From Neoconidiobolus thromboides FSU 785 (Eukaryota > Fungi > Entomophthoromycota), in NCBI GenBank assembly GCA_025603075.1, contig MU626320.1, positions 1 to 64,000 on the forward strand: 64,000 bases of DNA, read 5' to 3'. This document shows positions 15,421-38,061 of the stretch, one piece after another (the stretch's first letter is position 1; each line of letters starts with the position of its first letter). A program made the translations under genes and the position numbers. The notes beneath the pieces were generated by a model that was given only the letters and a program-made list of their open reading frames with translations, was not told the origin of the DNA and did no database searches.

Positions 15421-16062
15421 GAACCTCAGAAAATCTTAAACTAGAAGAAAATAGTATTTAGGTCTAGACTAAGTTCTACATTAATTTAAAAGGCTTCTTT
15501 TTTGTAAACATAGAAATTGAAAGTTTGTAAGTAGTTATCATCAATATTAAACTAGCACTATATCAACATTTCTGTCATGTTTTGTTAACTATTCTTCCTG
15601 TAATTGTATAAATTTTTAATCTATTTTAAATAACTAGTAGTAAAAAACTGTGTAAAATAGATAAGCAATAAATGTACTATATAAAAGAACTTGTAACAAT
15701 TAATTCTCATTAAAAAAAATTTTTTGATTAAATTTACCAAACTAATGTTTAGTAAATTGGCTGTATTAACTTTTCATATAATTTTCTTAAAAATGTATTT
15801 ACATTAGTATTAGAAAGTTTATATAAAAAGGAAAATAAAATTATTAATATAATTCAAAAAATATGATAAGATTATTAGGTTTAGGAATTGGCCTTTTGTT
15901 ATTTTAATGTAAACTACCAATCAAAGTTAGGATATATATATACTTCCATATCCTGTTATTATCACTTATATCATTTCTTTAACAAGTTTAATTTTTACCT
16001 TTTCCTCTTTTTATTTTTTCGGAAGTTTACGTAAAAAAATCTTGATAGCTTTATGGTATAAT

Positions 16063-16383
16063 ATAATTTGTTAAAGATAGTAAATAGTCAACTTCAAGCA
16101 AAAAGTAAAATAAAATAGGTATAGAGATAAAAATAGGGATTAAATAATTAGCTTTTTTATTTCATCAATACAATTATAAACTATAATATTATAACTCCTT
16201 TTATTTTTCTAGAAAGGGTCATTTTTAACTCTTTTTTCTTAACCTAAAAAATATTGATAAAGATTATACTAGATAGAGTTTTTTTGATGAAAGATATCAT
16301 TATCTAAGTAAAGAAAAGATACTTATCATATAATGACAAACAATTAAGACATTGACAGAAGAAGAAATGTTTAACTCTTTAGA
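16063..16383 (+). promoter_or_regulatory. Upstream module shared with peptide precursor gene 2 (inverted copy at 37292-37611)
   Basis: About 9 differences in ~320 bp versus the reverse complement of 37292-37611; ends 148 bp before the ATG. Confidence 0.8.
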
Positions 16384-16530: not shown

Positions 16531-16983
16531 ATGAAATTGACTTCCTATATTGTTTTATTCGGTATAATTGCTTCCTCTTCTAGCCTTTCTCTAAAAAATG
16601 TCCGTGAGGTTAGTAAAAATACTTTAGGACGACGTTTTATTCCTCCTCAGTTATTTGATCAATTGGCATCAGCTAAAGCTTTTTTTAGACGCAAATATCA
16701 AGTTGATAGTAATGGAGGTGAAGTCTTAAGTAAACGTTTTGATCAAATGTTTATGGATGCACTTAATGGACGTATTCCTGGAGTTAACTATCGTAGAGGT
16801 AAAGAGGGAGACAAGAGTTTAAGTAAACGTTTTGATCAAATGTTTATGGATGCAGTTAATGGACGTATTCCTGGAGTTAACTATCGTAGAGGTAAAGAGG
16901 GAGACGAGAGTTTAAGTAAACGTTTTGATCAAATGTTTATGGATGCAGTTAATGGACGTATTCCTGGAGTTAACTATCGCTGA
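16531..16983 (+). CDS. Secreted Kex2-processed repeat-peptide precursor 1 (KEP-like), 150 aa
   Basis: Signal peptide; three 93-bp repeats encoding KR-FDQMFMDA(L/V)NGRIPGVNY-RR, plus RR-FIPPQLFDQLASAKAFF-RR. Confidence 0.92.
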   Translation: MKLTSYIVLFGIIASSSSLSLKNVREVSKNTLGRRFIPPQLFDQLASAKAFFRRKYQVDSNGGEVLSKRFDQMFMDALNGRIPGVNYRRGKEGDKSLSKRFDQMFMDAVNGRIPGVNYRRGKEGDESLSKRFDQMFMDAVNGRIPGVNYR

Positions 16984-19534: not shown

Positions 19535-21274
19535 ATGAGATTACTTTTACCTTTAATTTATTTGACTCAATTAATATTGAGCAAAGAAGTGAGTCAAGAA
19601 TGGACTCTTACCGATGCTAAAATGGCACCTGATAACTTTGTAGTCGATGGGGTATTAATCAATGGTCAATTCCCAGGTCCTCAAATTGATGCTACTGCTG
19701 GTGATTCAATCAAAATCAAAGTGAATAATCAATTACATAAGAATGTAACTATTCATTGGCATGGAATTACTCAAAAAGGATCCATTAAAGCGGATGGAGC
19801 ACCTATGGTCACTCAAGAACCTATAATGCCAGGAAAGAGTTACATTTATAGTTTTAATTTACATGATCAAAGTGGTACTTACTTTTATCATGCTCATACA
19901 GATATGGATTCAGAGCATATTTATGGAGCATTAATTGTTCAAGATAAAAAAGAAATTTGGAATGATATTATTAAATTTAATTCGGAATATAAATATGATG
20001 AAGAAATAACTGTCTTATTGTCTGAAAGATGGCATAAAACAACAGAAGAACTAATTCATGGCTTAACTACTGTTCCTTTTAAATTTAGTAATCAATCCCA
20101 AAGTATATTAACTAACGGTAGAACTTATCAAAAATGGGAGAATAATATGAATGGTGGTACTGCTGAAGATTTAAAGAGATTCAATGATGGCTTTAGTGTT
20201 ATTAATGTAAAACCAAATAAAACATATAGATTACGTTTGATAGGTGCTAATGGCTATTCTCTATTTACATATAACATTGAAGGTCATGATTTAACTATTA
20301 TTGAAGCAGATGGCACTTTAATTGATCCTATTAAAGTAGATAGAGTAGAATTAAGTAGTGGTCAACGATATTCTGTATTATTGAAAACAAACAAAAAAGT
20401 AGATAATTATTATATGTATACCCAAGTGAGTGATGAATTAAGACCTGAAGCACGTAAACCAGTAGCTAAAAATGGAGTAGCTATTCTTCATTATGATGGC
20501 GCAAAGAGTACTTCATCTTTAATACGTACAGATAAACAAGTACCTGGATTACAATTTGAATATTCCCATTGGGTAGAATCTAAACTATTTACTTCTAAAT
20601 GGTACAATAAAGGATTATCTAAACATTTTTACCCAGTACCAAAGAAGGCAACTAAAGAAATCAATTTAATAGTTACATTAAGAAAACCAAATACAATATC
20701 AAGATGGTTTATCAATGATAATGATAATAAACCAAGGGATAGTGTATTAATTGAAGATATGCAGTCTGGAAAATATAAACCAAGTGCAGGTATTTATGAA
20801 ATTAAAGAAGGTGATGATGTTCAAATTATTGTACAACATACAATGCCAACTGGTAAACATTGTGAAGTTCATCCATGGCATTTACATGGTCATTCATTCT
20901 ATGTTGTTGGACATGGTGATGGATTTTATGATCCAAAAGTAGATGGTCCGAAGATTGATAATTATTTAGCGACTACTAAGAATAATCCTATTTTAAGAGA
21001 CACTTATACTCAATTTATTACAGATGTTCCGGAAGTGGGTAAACCTCTAAATCAAACTAATTCTAGACTTGGCCCTATTGATGATAGTGTAGATATGTTT
21101 TCTGGACTTGATGGATTAGGTGAAAAACCACTCAATTCAGATGATCTTCCTTGTGGTTGGTATGCTATTCGCTTTAAGGCTGATAACCCAGGGGCTTGGT
21201 TTATGCATTGTCATATGGCAGCTCATATCATCATGGGTAAAATAGTTATTATTAACTATGTTCCTAAGAATTAA
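19535..21274 (+). CDS. Secreted multicopper oxidase (laccase/ascorbate oxidase-like), 579 aa, intronless
   Basis: Signal peptide; all four Cu motifs HWHG, YFYHAH, HPWHLHGH, HCHMAAHIIMG. Confidence 0.95.
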   Translation: MRLLLPLIYLTQLILSKEVSQEWTLTDAKMAPDNFVVDGVLINGQFPGPQIDATAGDSIKIKVNNQLHKNVTIHWHGITQKGSIKADGAPMVTQEPIMPGKSYIYSFNLHDQSGTYFYHAHTDMDSEHIYGALIVQDKKEIWNDIIKFNSEYKYDEEITVLLSERWHKTTEELIHGLTTVPFKFSNQSQSILTNGRTYQKWENNMNGGTAEDLKRFNDGFSVINVKPNKTYRLRLIGANGYSLFTYNIEGHDLTIIEADGTLIDPIKVDRVELSSGQRYSVLLKTNKKVDNYYMYTQVSDELRPEARKPVAKNGVAILHYDGAKSTSSLIRTDKQVPGLQFEYSHWVESKLFTSKWYNKGLSKHFYPVPKKATKEINLIVTLRKPNTISRWFINDNDNKPRDSVLIEDMQSGKYKPSAGIYEIKEGDDVQIIVQHTMPTGKHCEVHPWHLHGHSFYVVGHGDGFYDPKVDGPKIDNYLATTKNNPILRDTYTQFITDVPEVGKPLNQTNSRLGPIDDSVDMFSGLDGLGEKPLNSDDLPCGWYAIRFKADNPGAWFMHCHMAAHIIMGKIVIINYVPKN

Positions 21275-33581: not shown

Positions 33582-34463
33582 ATGCATCTGTTAAAAACAT
33601 TAACCGGAGTATTGGTAGCAAGAGCAATAAAGAATTTTCATGAAGAGGGGGTTAAAAAAGGGTATGGAAAATACAAACCCAATCAACTTGTAATTGAACA
33701 AAGTAATCAAAATAGCAACGGCACTTCGGATTCTAGGATTGTAGGCGGAGTAAAAACAAATAATCAAGAATTTCCATGGCTAGTATCTATTGGCAGTAAA
33801 TTAGTACCACATAATTGTGGTGGTACAGTAATAGGGGAAAAAGTAGTAGTTAGTGCGGCCCATTGTATCATGGGAAAAACACCTATTGAAAGTTATCATG
33901 TTAAATATGGATTAGATAAATTAGATGATCAAGAAAACGTCCAAACTTTACAAGTTTCTTCAATTATTTCTCATCCAGAATATAAAAAAGTCCCCATATT
34001 TAACTTTAACGATATTGCTATATTTATTTTAAAAGACCCGATAAAAGATTTTAAGGCCATCAGCGGTGCTGTTACTGAAGCTACTACTACAGTCGATCAA
34101 TTAGTTACAGTTGCTGGTTGGGGAGCCACTTCTTTTAATGGTGGGGCATCAAATGATTTACTTAAAGTTGATTTAAAAACTGTGAGTGCAGAAGAATGTA
34201 AAAAAACATGGCTTGTGATGGAGGATAAAACATCGATATGCGCTGAAATAAAAGAAGGAGGGAAGGATGCATGTCAAGGGGATTCTGGAGGCCCATTGAT
34301 GAGCTCAGATGAAAATGGCCAATACAAACTTTTAGGCATTGTTTCCGTTGGTAAGGGATGTGGGGATAAAGACACCCCAGGGGTTTATTCAAGAGTTTCT
34401 GCCTTTTTACCTTGGATTAAAGATGAAACTAGTAAATTGGGACTAACTACTACCTTTGGATAG
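33582..34463 (+). CDS. Trypsin-like S1 serine protease, 293 aa
   Basis: Activation site SR|IVGG; AAHC, NDIA, GDSGGP triad; Asp in the S1 pocket (KDACQG). Confidence 0.95.
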   Translation: MHLLKTLTGVLVARAIKNFHEEGVKKGYGKYKPNQLVIEQSNQNSNGTSDSRIVGGVKTNNQEFPWLVSIGSKLVPHNCGGTVIGEKVVVSAAHCIMGKTPIESYHVKYGLDKLDDQENVQTLQVSSIISHPEYKKVPIFNFNDIAIFILKDPIKDFKAISGAVTEATTTVDQLVTVAGWGATSFNGGASNDLLKVDLKTVSAEECKKTWLVMEDKTSICAEIKEGGKDACQGDSGGPLMSSDENGQYKLLGIVSVGKGCGDKDTPGVYSRVSAFLPWIKDETSKLGLTTTFG

Positions 34464-34708: not shown

Positions 34709-35121
34709 CTCTATATTATAATAGATGCAAGACCAAGGTCCAAAGACATTTGAAAAGAATTTTTAGAGTTACGATTAATATTTTCCAAATACACGTTTCC
34801 TTACCACTAAACATTTTTTGAAGTTTGTTTTGCGATACTTAGTAGGTTTGAGATCTCAATTTAAGTTGCATCAAAATCCAAGCTTTGAAATTCTATCTGT
34901 TCCTTTCTTAAATCAAAAATTTTGATTACATTGTGACTTTATAAGTTCTATTAAATTATATATTAAAATAATAAAGATTAAGAATATTTGTATACCCTGA
35001 TATTCATATTTAATAGTAATAAAATCATATAAATTTAAACTTTTAAACTATTGCAATTAAAAATCATTATTTCAATATTTTGGATGGTTAAATTTAGTTA
35101 CCTCAGTTAGTTATGTTTTAG

Positions 35122-35471
35122 CTACCAAAGGCGATCACCATTAAGTACGACCATATAGGGTGTATAAAAACACTTTTCTAAAGCATCATACCCTTGATAA
35201 ATTTCGTCATATTTATCTTCAAATTCTTGAGCATTTCTGAGTATTTCACTAAGTAGATTAAAACTACCTTGGCCTTACTGTAAAATATCACCTCCTTCAT
35301 AACTTCTATTGAATTTACCCGCACTATGAGCAGAATTCAATGCTACCAAAAAGTCTGTAATTGTACATTTTTTCTAAAGCATTCTCACTTGAATCGCCCG
35401 CATTTATAAATAAATAAAGACTGGAAGAAGAAATAGTGGTAATGAATAAAACAATACGAAGTCAACTCTAT
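35122..35471 (-). pseudogene. Decayed KEP-family peptide precursor
   Basis: ATA for ATG, two frameshifts, one stop; IVLFITTISSSSL...ENALEK(C)...FNRSYEGGDILQ*...DALEK(C)FYTPYMVVLNGDRLW. Confidence 0.75.
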
Positions 35472-36626
35472 TTTTTTGCTTTTAATGGTTCATGAGAATT
35501 GCGCTTTTTTTATACTCGAAGTGTGAGTTTTATTTGAGGTTCACATGCTGTTGTTGTTATCTTATAATAGACTTTTGTTAGGATATATTTCACTCTTTTA
35601 TAGTAATAGATAGGACTTTGAAGGGCTAATTTTTACTTCTTCGTCCAATATTTTACTTGCTTATTGATTTATAATCTACTTTTTCTTTACTTAGATGATG
35701 ATACCTTTTATAATGGAATTTACAGTTGATAAATTTTACTTGATGATTTATAAGTTAAGAGAAAAAAGTTAAGAACCCACCTTCAAAAAGGGAGCTGTAG
35801 TTCAATCTTTTATAGTCATATTGATAAAATAAACAAAGAGTCCAAATTTGATGTTTTAAAATAGACATCTATATTTAAGTATTGCCTATTTTACATCACT
35901 TTTTTTGAAACTTTTTTTTGGCTTTTTAAATGAGCTACTATTGTTTGCTACTTCTGTCCTAAAAGAGTTATATTAGACCATAAACTCAAACAAGTTTTTT
36001 TCTATATAACTTCCGAAAAAAATTCAAGGAAAAAGGAGCAAAAAGAGCTAATCATTTTAAAAGTTCTGAAAAAGTTCTAATAATTTTATAAAAGTAAGTT
36101 TGTATTTTAATTTACTTGATATCATCTATTCTATAAAGGATAATAGTTGTTATTGACTGCCAATTTGATAATGTGTATTTATTGTTTATTCATTTTATAG
36201 AAATTTTTATAATTAACTGTCTTAATGTAGACAATTTCTTTACAAATAATAATTTTAATATTTTGTTATATACATAACAACTTTATAATAAATAATAAAA
36301 TTTAAATACTTTTATGAATTTTATTAGCCTTATAATAGTCGTTTTTTACTATAGTGTAACATTTTAAAGCCCCATATATAAAACGTCGAGATGTGTAAAT
36401 CATTACTTCAGCTATCTTAAGATTTTATAAGATACTTTAAATTCTATATCAAAACATTGAAGATAGAGTACATTTCAATCCAGTTATTTACATATATAAA
36501 GGATAGAATCATGAAAATTTAAATTAAACATTTAGAATCAAAAATATTTATTTGAAGTATTTTGAAGGATTAAGCGTATGTATCACATTTAGTGTTCATA
36601 CACTAAGGTGATTAATTCTAAGGATC

Positions 36627-37148
36627 TTAACCTTGGATCATTTGTTCAAGAATATGAGGAGGGATAAAACGCTTTCCTAAATCATCATTTCCACCATAGC
36701 TTCTACGATAGTTACCGTTCATCAGTTGGTGAAAAGTATTAGGAGGGGGGATAAAGCGTTTTTCTAAATCATCGTTCCCACCATAGCTTCTACGATAGTT
36801 ACCGTTCATCAGTTGGTGAAAAGTATTAGGAGGGGGGATAAAACGTTGTTGTAAGGTATTATCTACTTTGTTACTATCAGGATAACTACGCCCAAAAAGA
36901 TTACCTGCTGCAATTTGATCAAGCAAATAAGGAGAAATAAAACGTTGTTGTAAAGTACTATCTACTTTAGCATTATCTGGATGGTCACGCCTAAAAATAC
37001 CTTTAGCTGCTGACAATTGTTCAAGTACATAAGGAGGAATAAATCGTTGCCCTAAAGCATTCTTAGCAACCTCACGTACATTTTTAAGAGGAAGGCTGAT
37101 AGAAGAAGCAATGGCAGTGAATAAGACAACACAAGAAGTCAATTTCAT
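36627..37148 (-). CDS. Secreted repeat-peptide precursor 2 (KEP-like), 173 aa
   Basis: Signal/pro region homologous to precursor 1; five cores starting FI(P/S)P after QR or KR; 87-bp repeat encoding FIPPPNTFHQLMNGNY-RR-SYGGNDDL(E/G)-KR. Confidence 0.92.
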   Translation of the reverse strand: MKLTSCVVLFTAIASSISLPLKNVREVAKNALGQRFIPPYVLEQLSAAKGIFRRDHPDNAKVDSTLQQRFISPYLLDQIAAGNLFGRSYPDSNKVDNTLQQRFIPPPNTFHQLMNGNYRRSYGGNDDLEKRFIPPPNTFHQLMNGNYRRSYGGNDDLGKRFIPPHILEQMIQG

Positions 37149-37291
37149 TTTTTTTAACAGAAATTAATAAGAATCGGGATTTTTTTGATACTTAAGCTAT
37201 GGAGTCGCTTTGAAGTTTATATACTATTATGAATATCTTATGATGTGGTCTCGTTGATGTTTACCTAACTCTTTTAGGATCACAGATAGAC

Positions 37292-37611
37292 TCTAAAGAG
37301 TTAAACATTTCTTCTTCTGCTAATGTCTCAATTGTTTGTCATTATATGATAAGTATCTTTTCCTTACTCGGATAATGATATCTTTCATCAAAAAAACTCT
37401 ATCTAGTATAATATTTATCAATATTTTTTAGGTTAAGAAAAAAGAGTTAAAAATGACCCTTTCTAGAAAAATAAAAGGAGTTATAATATTATAGTTTATA
37501 ATTGTATTGATGAAATAAAAAAGCTAATTATTTAATCCCTATTTTTATCTCTATACCTATTTTATTTTACTTTTTGCTTGAAGTTGACTATTACTATTTT
37601 TAACAAATTAT
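37292..37611 (-). promoter_or_regulatory. Upstream module shared with precursor gene 1
   Basis: Near-identical reverse complement of 16063-16383; ends 144 bp before the ATG. Confidence 0.8.
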
Positions 37612-38061
37612 GTTGCGTCACGGATGTTAGATATTTATATATAAACTTCTAAATAAAAGAGTGAAAAAAGGGTTAAAAAAATACATTTGCTCATTAAAGA
37701 AATGACAAAGAGATAATAGCAGAATTAAAAAGTAAATACATTCTAAAATTAGTTGTTAGATTTACATTAAGGTAATAAAAGGCTAACTTTTAGATGTAAT
37801 AGTCAAATTATCCTTAAAATTCTAATGATAACTTTGTTTTTCTTTTTGAAATAAACCTGTTGATTATATTGATAAACAAGTTTTAAAAAAACATATTTTA
37901 AAATATAAAATTGATTTATAAAATCTTACTTTAAAAAAATTCTTCAAAATTTTTATTTTATAAAAGACTGATACTATAGCTTCTTTTATAAAATATACCT
38001 ATTATTTACTTTTTTTTACCCACATTTTATAATTAGTTATTTAAAAATAAAAATACTATAT

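Follow-up and report, generated by a model that had tools for sequence, protein, structure and literature searches.

The 64,000-nucleotide window analysed here, positions 1 to 64,000 of the forward strand of contig MU626320.1 (assembly GCA_025603075.1), comes from the fungus Neoconidiobolus thromboides FSU 785. Its minus strand carries, at 36627..37148, an ATG-to-TAA open reading frame (ORF) of 173 amino acids, referred to below as precursor 2, which is transcribed and probably encodes a Kex2-processed repeat protein (KEP) of the fungal type, a prepropeptide that would be processed and exported as short peptides. KEPs occur in nearly all fungi, and almost none of them has a known function. The only feature that lifts precursor 2 above an ordinary KEP is the likeness of three of its repeats to the PPL motif found in the propeptides of protealysin-like proteases (PLPs), which belong to the M4 metalloproteases.

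Precursor architecture and predicted processing

KEPs are defined by a signal peptide, internal repeats and KR, RR or KK sites between the repeats (PMC6339444; PMC7329392). All three features are present in precursor 2; Kex2 sites separate units 3-5 throughout and units 1-2 in part, and in the paralogue, precursor 1, every junction is dibasic. The number of KEPs per strain is highest in Zoopagomycota (11.56, with 19 in Conidiobolus coronatus; PMC7329392), and N. thromboides lies outside both published KEP surveys (PMC6339444; PMC7329392).

The ORF is complete and intronless, since the RNA contigs of run X1 are colinear with it and no contig joint interrupts it. A sequence-only reading of this DNA had described five cores with an F-I-(P/S)-P start, and these read exactly as claimed: FIPPYVLEQLSAAKGIF, FISPYLLDQIAAGNLFG, two copies of FIPPPNTFHQLMNGNY and, just before the stop codon, FIPPHILEQMIQG. 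They amount to four different sequences, one of them duplicated, which alternate with hydrophilic acidic spacers in a protein ending ...MIQG-stop. The chain opens with a predicted signal peptide of about residues 1-18 (MKLTSCVVLFTAIASSIS, 37095..37148), composed of MK, LTSCVVLFTAIA and SSIS, with a basic n-region, a 12-residue hydrophobic core and small residues at -3 and -1. The pro-region follows (residues 19-35, 37044..37094) and ends in LGQR.

Core 1 (36993..37043) is preceded by a monobasic QR and followed by RR, which together with acidic spacer 1 (DHPDNAKVDSTLQQR) occupies 36942..36992. Core 2 (36891..36941) has QR before it and a single R behind it, the latter belonging with spacer 2 (SYPDSNKVDNTLQQR) to 36843..36890. 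Core 3 (36795..36842) again lies between QR and RR, and the RR with spacer 3, SYGGNDDLEKR, spans 36756..36794. Core 4 (36708..36755) repeats the sequence of core 3 between canonical Kex2 sites, KR and RR, and is followed by the RR and spacer 4, SYGGNDDLGKR (36669..36707), whereas core 5 (36630..36668) is bounded by KR and the stop codon. Two DNA arrays detected with Tandem Repeats Finder underlie the cores, one of period 87 (2.3 copies, 91% matches) and one of period 99 (2.1 copies, 78% matches). Units 3 and 4 are identical at 82 of 87 nucleotides (94%); their core parts are 100% identical and the differences are confined to the spacer.

Five of the nine junctions are dibasic (RR three times, KR twice) and four are monobasic (QR three times, GR once). 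The N-side sites of cores 1 to 3 read L-G-Q-R, L-Q-Q-R and L-Q-Q-R, and leucine occupies P4 in every N-side site of the precursor, as it does in the LDKR site of yeast alpha-factor. Because this leucine is kept and all seven internal junctions of precursor 1 are dibasic, the glutamine looks like a derived K/R-to-Q change. The genome also encodes a kexin of 597 amino acids (contig C335) with a Peptidase_S8 domain (E 6.7e-45) and a P-domain (E 3.1e-23), and a second P-domain locus is found on contig C54.

From this organization we infer secretion and a cleavage pattern. The prepropeptide would enter the endoplasmic reticulum by means of its signal peptide, a kexin-type convertase of the late secretory pathway would cut behind L-x-(K/R)-R and RR, and the fragments would then lose their basic residues to a carboxypeptidase. 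The exported products would be short, linear, uncharged-to-acidic hydrophobic peptides starting with Phe-Ile-Pro-Pro, accompanied by acidic spacer peptides. Strict dibasic cutting would yield only core 4 (FIPPPNTFHQLMNGNY) and core 5 (FIPPHILEQMIQG) in clean form, besides spacers 3 and 4. To liberate cores 1 and 2, the G-R site and the three L-x-Q-R sites would have to be cut too, whether by a convertase with relaxed specificity at P2 or by a trypsin-like enzyme outside the cell. Processing and export of KEP peptides have been described in other fungi (PMC9769878).

Compared with the fungal KEPs, whose prototype is yeast MF-alpha1, precursor 2 has the same signal peptide, pro-region, tandem units split by KR or RR, leucine at P4 and genomic kexin, and is likewise a small, intronless, highly expressed gene with lineage-specific core sequences. 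It differs in its four monobasic junctions, in having hydrophobic cores alternate with acidic spacers rather than repeating a single unit, in carrying four distinct cores within one precursor, and in having neither a Ste13 signature nor relatives elsewhere.

Several points weigh against the assignment to this class or reduce what it can tell. The QR and GR junctions, four of the nine, are non-canonical Kex2 sites, glutamine at P2 makes a poor substrate for yeast Kex2, and it is uncertain whether cores 1 and 2 are released. The signal peptide rests on by-eye judgement, and the peptides are predictions from the gene and its mRNA. Furthermore, KEP knock-outs in Coprinopsis had no phenotype and the corresponding peptides no antibacterial activity (PMC9769878), so that membership of the class gives little functional guidance.

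Transcription

Precursor 2 is a real and abundant polyadenylated mRNA, its transcription being shown by the contrast with the flanks and by the tail. RNA contigs of run X1, compared with 34900-38000, cover 36531-37187 with summed word depths of 2,500-350,000, contig depth being no quantitative measure of expression; the depth falls to 40-330 in 37188-37603 and to 0 in 35732-36459 and 37604-38000. The public run X1 contains 62% of the words sampled from 36300-37500. A loose end of 21 T on the plus strand before 36531 is the poly(A) tail of a minus-strand RNA. The 3' untranslated region thus bounded is about 96 nucleotides long (36531..36626, minus strand) and contains AATAAA at 36547-36552 in the minus-strand reading, 16-21 nucleotides ahead of the poly(A) addition site at 36531.

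The main transcription start probably lies near 37188, as RNA depth drops about 500-fold above 37187; contig depth likewise gives a 5' untranslated region of about 40 nucleotides. A TATA-like box, GTATATAAA (37216..37224, minus strand), is situated about 70 nucleotides upstream of the ATG and is conserved in both paralogues.

Runs from other studies, one of them a poly(A) metatranscriptome, contain transcribed copies that are identical or 90-99% identical, and the gene therefore exists and is transcribed beyond one sample. Runs X3 and X9, labelled as other organisms or studies, contain such 90-99% identical copies. Low-depth copies of exact identity also occur in an unrelated 2016 run, X2, where they could be carry-over of a very abundant transcript.

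A small and diverging family

The leader of precursor 2 had been called homologous to that of precursor 1, and the comparison upholds this. The paralogue, precursor 1 (16531..16983, plus strand, 150 amino acids), combines the same leader with one FIPP core and three FDQMFMDA(L/V)NGRIPGVNY cores, and matches precursor 2 by BLASTP with E 1e-27 at 41-43% identity. By our own count 26 of the 35 leader residues are identical (74%), as are nine of 17 residues in the first cores; the later cores of precursor 1 barely align, only their ends being in common with cores 3 and 4 of precursor 2. These two are the only live copies in the genome. A third, decayed copy (35122..35471, minus strand), 1.2 kb downstream of precursor 2, has no ATG and is broken by stops and frame changes; it retains a leader remnant, ..IVLFITTISSSSL..ENALEK, and the spacer remnants FNRSYEGGDILQ and DALEK, and its RNA depth in X1 is only 3.6.

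The same division between leader and cores appears in the variants found in other runs. Cores and spacers carry 11 non-synonymous and five synonymous changes versus one and five in the leader (Fisher p = 0.056), and the signal-peptide region and the residues just after it show five synonymous and no non-synonymous changes. One variant in run X3, S72P in core 2, turns FISPY into FIPPY. The idea of a conserved leader with fast-changing cores is thereby supported both between the paralogues and among the variants. Precursor 2 belongs to a small, lineage-restricted birth-and-death family, with two live genes and a dead one in a span of 21 kb. Duplication of tandem units and point changes diversify the cores, and the leader is kept. 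An 83-nucleotide contig of run X9, with 90-95% likeness, joins 36720 back to 36637 and hints, with low confidence, at a polymorphism in unit number or a recombinant (84-nucleotide) unit.

By the sequence searches made, the family is an orphan whose cores have no relatives elsewhere. A word-indexed search of 5.8 billion proteins returned the paralogue only, and phmmer against 1.84 billion representative proteins gave four matches, none of them a true relative beyond the paralogue (P0001). The other three were rejected because repeat-on-repeat matching inflates E-values: P0002 (670 amino acids) is an ORF over a tandem DNA repeat that reads all three frames of one unit in turn, P0004 (106 amino acids) is an ORF over a tandem DNA repeat with stops and poly-G length changes on a contig of 46% GC, and P0003 is a long tetratricopeptide repeat protein. 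Repeat-ORF "proteins" of this kind in public collections (P0004 and P0002; loci L128, 2800-3250, and L129/L130, 3001-5013) give misleadingly low E-values against repeat queries. A sequence search of the PDB with the whole protein and with core 5 gave no match at E <= 10, and Rfam gave none on 36400-37800. Structural neighbours with TM-scores of 0.29-0.42 are meaningless, given that the predicted model has a pLDDT of 0.42.

Motif-level likeness to M4 protease propeptides

The sole Pfam match of precursor 2 is PF16485 (PLN_propep), at 31.1 bits versus a cut-off of 28.1, a threshold passed only by summing over the repeats: no single stretch passes it, and the units reach 16-17 bits at profile positions 1-15 of 43. 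Taken singly, core 5 scores 17.2 bits (E 0.0046), core 1 scores 16.4 bits (E 0.0079) and the precursor-1 core 11.7 bits (E 0.24); the single units of both precursors align at the same profile positions and match no other Pfam family. A genuine PLP propeptide, from a Stutzerimonas gene, scores 58.8 bits over positions 1-41 and is joined to both M4 domains. The M4 catalytic domain (Peptidase_M4/M4_C) was found neither in precursor 2 nor in the genome, in a search whose controls matched in Bacillus subtilis and Methanosarcina. A six-frame search of the fungal genome with PF16485 gave no match, precursor 2 itself included, as its initial filter passes over motifs this short. The likeness is one of motif and not of family membership. 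In contrast to a PLP propeptide, the motif in precursor 2 is repeated, predicted to be secreted through the endoplasmic reticulum, and flanked by convertase sites.

The motif itself was scored with a position matrix whose source was a set of 11 PLP propeptides that the Pfam model had picked out in 401 Pseudomonadota genomes; the six-frame composition of the window served as background. Cores 1, 2 and 5 score 22.7, 20.2 and 23.6 bits, and the background maximum among 40,260 14-mers of the six-frame translation of the window is 14.2. The matrix is matched neither by the later precursor-1 cores nor by cores 3 and 4, whose common sequence scores -2.5 bits. These statistics come from the model-sampled set; PLP loci selected by pattern are biased in the first eight columns and serve as illustration only.

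Over about 13 residues, cores 1, 2 and 5 share with the PLP propeptides the pattern [FVIL]-I-P-P-[YH]-x-L-[DE]-x-[ILM]-[AIS]. The sampled bacterial propeptides include LIPPFVLEQISNDC and LIPPYMLDQIARHG, with FIPPYVLEQLSAAK and FISPYLLDQIAAGN as their fungal counterparts, and the likeness extends past PP-x-x-L, as a comparison of bacterial LIPPFVLEQIS and LIPPYMLDQIA with fungal FIPPYVLEQLS and FISPYLLDQIA makes plain. The PPL 11-mers of 821 PLPs follow x-C-x-[IVF]-[IV]-P-P-[YH]-x-L-x, and the carriers include the insect pathogens Serratia, Photorhabdus, Xenorhabdus, Beauveria, Metarhizium, Cordyceps and Ophiocordyceps (PMC6778150 supplement). The first residues of LIPPFVLEQISNDC are those of the Xenorhabdus beddingii entry in the same supplement. 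Autoprocessing of protealysin takes place at RS|VI, directly before the motif (PMC6778150), and V-I-P-P for this reason lies in the primed subsites S1'-S4'. The predicted free N-terminus of the fungal cores corresponds to the P1' residue of that autoprocessing site. The PPL motif is reported to block the active site of the proenzyme in its S' subsites, and the position of the autoprocessing site supports this.

Three tandem PLP genes are found in one gammaproteobacterial genome (G198, contig C79, 208641-211392; L136, L142 and L143). One propeptide 11-mer of this trio equals the Xenorhabdus beddingii entry, and, among bacterial sequences, the motif that it carries, LIPPFVLEQIS, matches core 1 most closely.

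Candidate functions

It is intriguing, if doubtful, that this insect-pathogenic fungus might export, from one very abundant mRNA, Kex2-released mimics of the N-terminal, active-site-occupying segment of bacterial and ascomycete PLP propeptides against the metalloproteases of competing microbes. The FIPP(Y/H)xL(E/D)Q(L/I/M) peptides would imitate the PPL segment and sit in the primed subsites, forming a multi-copy cocktail of competitive inhibitors or decoys. This role would be compatible with the KEP mechanism, and its targets could be PLPs of Serratia, Photorhabdus, Xenorhabdus or ascomycete entomopathogens within the insect; as the fungus itself lacks an M4 domain, the target would be foreign. 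PF16485 is the only Pfam match of the whole protein and of its single units alike, the matrix scores of the three cores (20.2-23.6 bits) exceed the background maximum of 14.2 bits, and the bacterial and fungal sequences agree beyond PP-x-x-L. A Kex2 cut would free the fungal peptides at a residue exactly equivalent to P1' of protealysin. The motif portion is the constant part of the core, to which the S72P variant restores FIPP, and PLPs are present in many insect pathogens (PMC6778150 supplement).

These arguments are offset by others. The match extends over about 13 residues only, chance alone should produce a few 14-mers of about 22 bits per genome, and the summed PF16485 score is inflated because the units are paralogous and not independent; the motif is moreover missing from cores 3 and 4 and from the later precursor-1 cores. 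Product-like peptides on the primed side are usually weak inhibitors. Incidental Pfam matches are frequent in KEP cores, "Apidaecin" being one example (PMC7329392), and PLPs are largely intracellular in bacteria (PMC6778150).

Were the mimicry real, it would give KEPs a new role in microbial competition inside insects and would be the first biochemical target assigned to a KEP outside pheromones and toxins, a cross-kingdom mimicry of a zymogen latch that could supply peptide leads against a virulence-linked bacterial protease family. Should it fail, the locus remains an ordinary orphan KEP. The PPL likeness is in any case a concrete biochemical hypothesis that can be tested with an existing fluorogenic assay, and precursor 2 is unusually tractable, with an abundant transcript, peptides that can be synthesised, a two-gene family with a dead copy, and visible variation among strains.

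A further tentative reading takes the peptides as pheromone-like or quorum-type self-signals for which the fungus itself would have a receptor, in the manner of yeast alpha-factor, the founding KEP. The architecture of MF-alpha is the same, comprising signal peptide, pro-region, L-x-K-R sites and repeated peptides of 13-17 residues (PMC6339444), and the N-terminal motif is kept across cores and paralogues as a receptor epitope would be. Yet the cores differ strongly within the precursor and between strains, which is unusual for the ligand of one receptor, and the absence of a Ste13 (XA/XP) signature and the extremely high transcript abundance also speak against self-signalling. We know of no receptor, nor of peptide pheromones having been established in Entomophthoromycotina.

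A structural role is rather unlikely. In this reading the products would be surface-active peptides like the Rep1 repellents of Ustilago maydis, coating aerial hyphae, conidiophores or conidia in a lineage without hydrophobins. Rep1 is also an abundant KEP without a Ste13 signature, and its hydrophobic products stay on the hyphae (PMC6339444). Cores 1, 2 and 5 are similarly hydrophobic, with grand averages of hydropathy of 0.36-0.86, and a bulk structural product would suit the very deep transcript coverage. Cores 3 and 4, however, are hydrophilic (-0.54), no sequence likeness to Rep1 is apparent, and the wall-bound Rep1 repellents, at 34-55 amino acids, are much longer than the peptides predicted here.

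The sequence-only reading, here taken to mean a cocktail of amidated, amphipathic-helical toxins acting on membranes or on insects and comparable to candidalysin or frog-skin peptides, appears improbable. Ece1 of Candida albicans does show that a Kex2-cut polyprotein of a pathogenic fungus can yield several different short peptides, among them a cytolytic one. Candidalysin, however, has 31 residues, a cationic C-terminus and strong amphipathicity, whereas the peptides here have 13-17 residues, are neutral or acidic and not amphipathic, and bear no sequence likeness to it; with Pro-Pro near the N-terminus they are also too short to span a bilayer. The hydrophobic periodicity claimed for the cores did not survive comparison with shuffled sequences, since 18-75% of the shuffled versions of each peptide reach or surpass the helical moments of 0.10-0.26, and this, together with a net charge of 0 or -1, argues against membrane activity. 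Amidation fares no better: a glycine end occurs in only two of the five cores, core 2 (..LFG-R) and core 5 (..IQG-stop), the remaining three ending in F-RR or Y-RR. The peptidylglycine monooxygenase family PF01082, the PHM domain, had no match in the genome in a search whose control matched nowhere, which leaves its absence unproven. Finally, the abundant expression in what appears to be a culture transcriptome is not host-specific.

An insect-directed role might seem to gain from the nearest protein language-model neighbours, arthropod neuropeptide preprohormones (similarity 0.85), prothoracicostatic peptide among them, but this is a lead only and probably reflects architecture, shuffled proteins reaching 0.85 a third of the time. 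Preprohormones such as those of allatostatin, tachykinin and the pheromone biosynthesis-activating neuropeptide (PBAN) resemble precursor 2 in overall layout: behind a signal peptide come repeated short peptides with acidic spacers and basic cleavage sites. No peptide motif is common to both, and a consistent Gly-basic amidation signal is missing here. We read this neighbourhood as a shared precursor grammar and not as homology.

Least credible of all is a peptide made on ribosomes and then modified post-translationally (RiPP) in the strict sense, with cores cyclised or cross-linked by tailoring enzymes in dikaritin/ustiloxin or borosin style: the repeat precursor with Kex2 sites, the tyrosines in several cores, and two nearby genes, for a multicopper oxidase (2.5 kb from precursor 1) and for a trypsin-like protease (at 2.2 kb from precursor 2), would fit it, but no tailoring enzyme is evident, UstYa/DUF3328 (PF11807) had no match in the genome, in a search of unverified sensitivity whose control set contained no fungus, the paralogues share no neighbouring enzymes, the cores vary too much to suit a single tailoring enzyme, and DUF3328-linked KEPs number none in Zoopagomycota (PMC7329392 Table 1). 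What stands of the earlier interpretation is thus a precursor of a peptide cocktail with a conserved leader and fast-changing cores; its amidation, amphipathicity and RiPP components are not supported.

Neighbouring sequences

The protease near precursor 2 is a trypsin-family serine protease (PF00089, E 5.8e-51) encoded at 33582-34463 on the plus strand. The position of a basic-residue protease beside a precursor with monobasic junctions may be a coincidence, such proteases being common in this group. The oxidase downstream of precursor 1 is a three-domain multicopper oxidase or laccase-like ORF (19535-21274, plus strand), with no counterpart beside precursor 2.

Upstream of precursor 2 lies a module of about 323 bp (37298..37620, minus strand) that is 97% identical to 16060-16383 on the plus strand, ahead of precursor 1. 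The 24.6-Mb genome contains only these two copies, one ahead of each live precursor. The identity between the paralogues is higher in the module (97%) than in the coding leaders (78% at the DNA level) or in the roughly 150 bp between module and ATG (about 65%). Transcription of the module in X1 is weak, at a depth of 48-270 versus tens of thousands for the ORF. Gene conversion could explain the module, or it could be an element under strong constraint that acts in regulation or as RNA.

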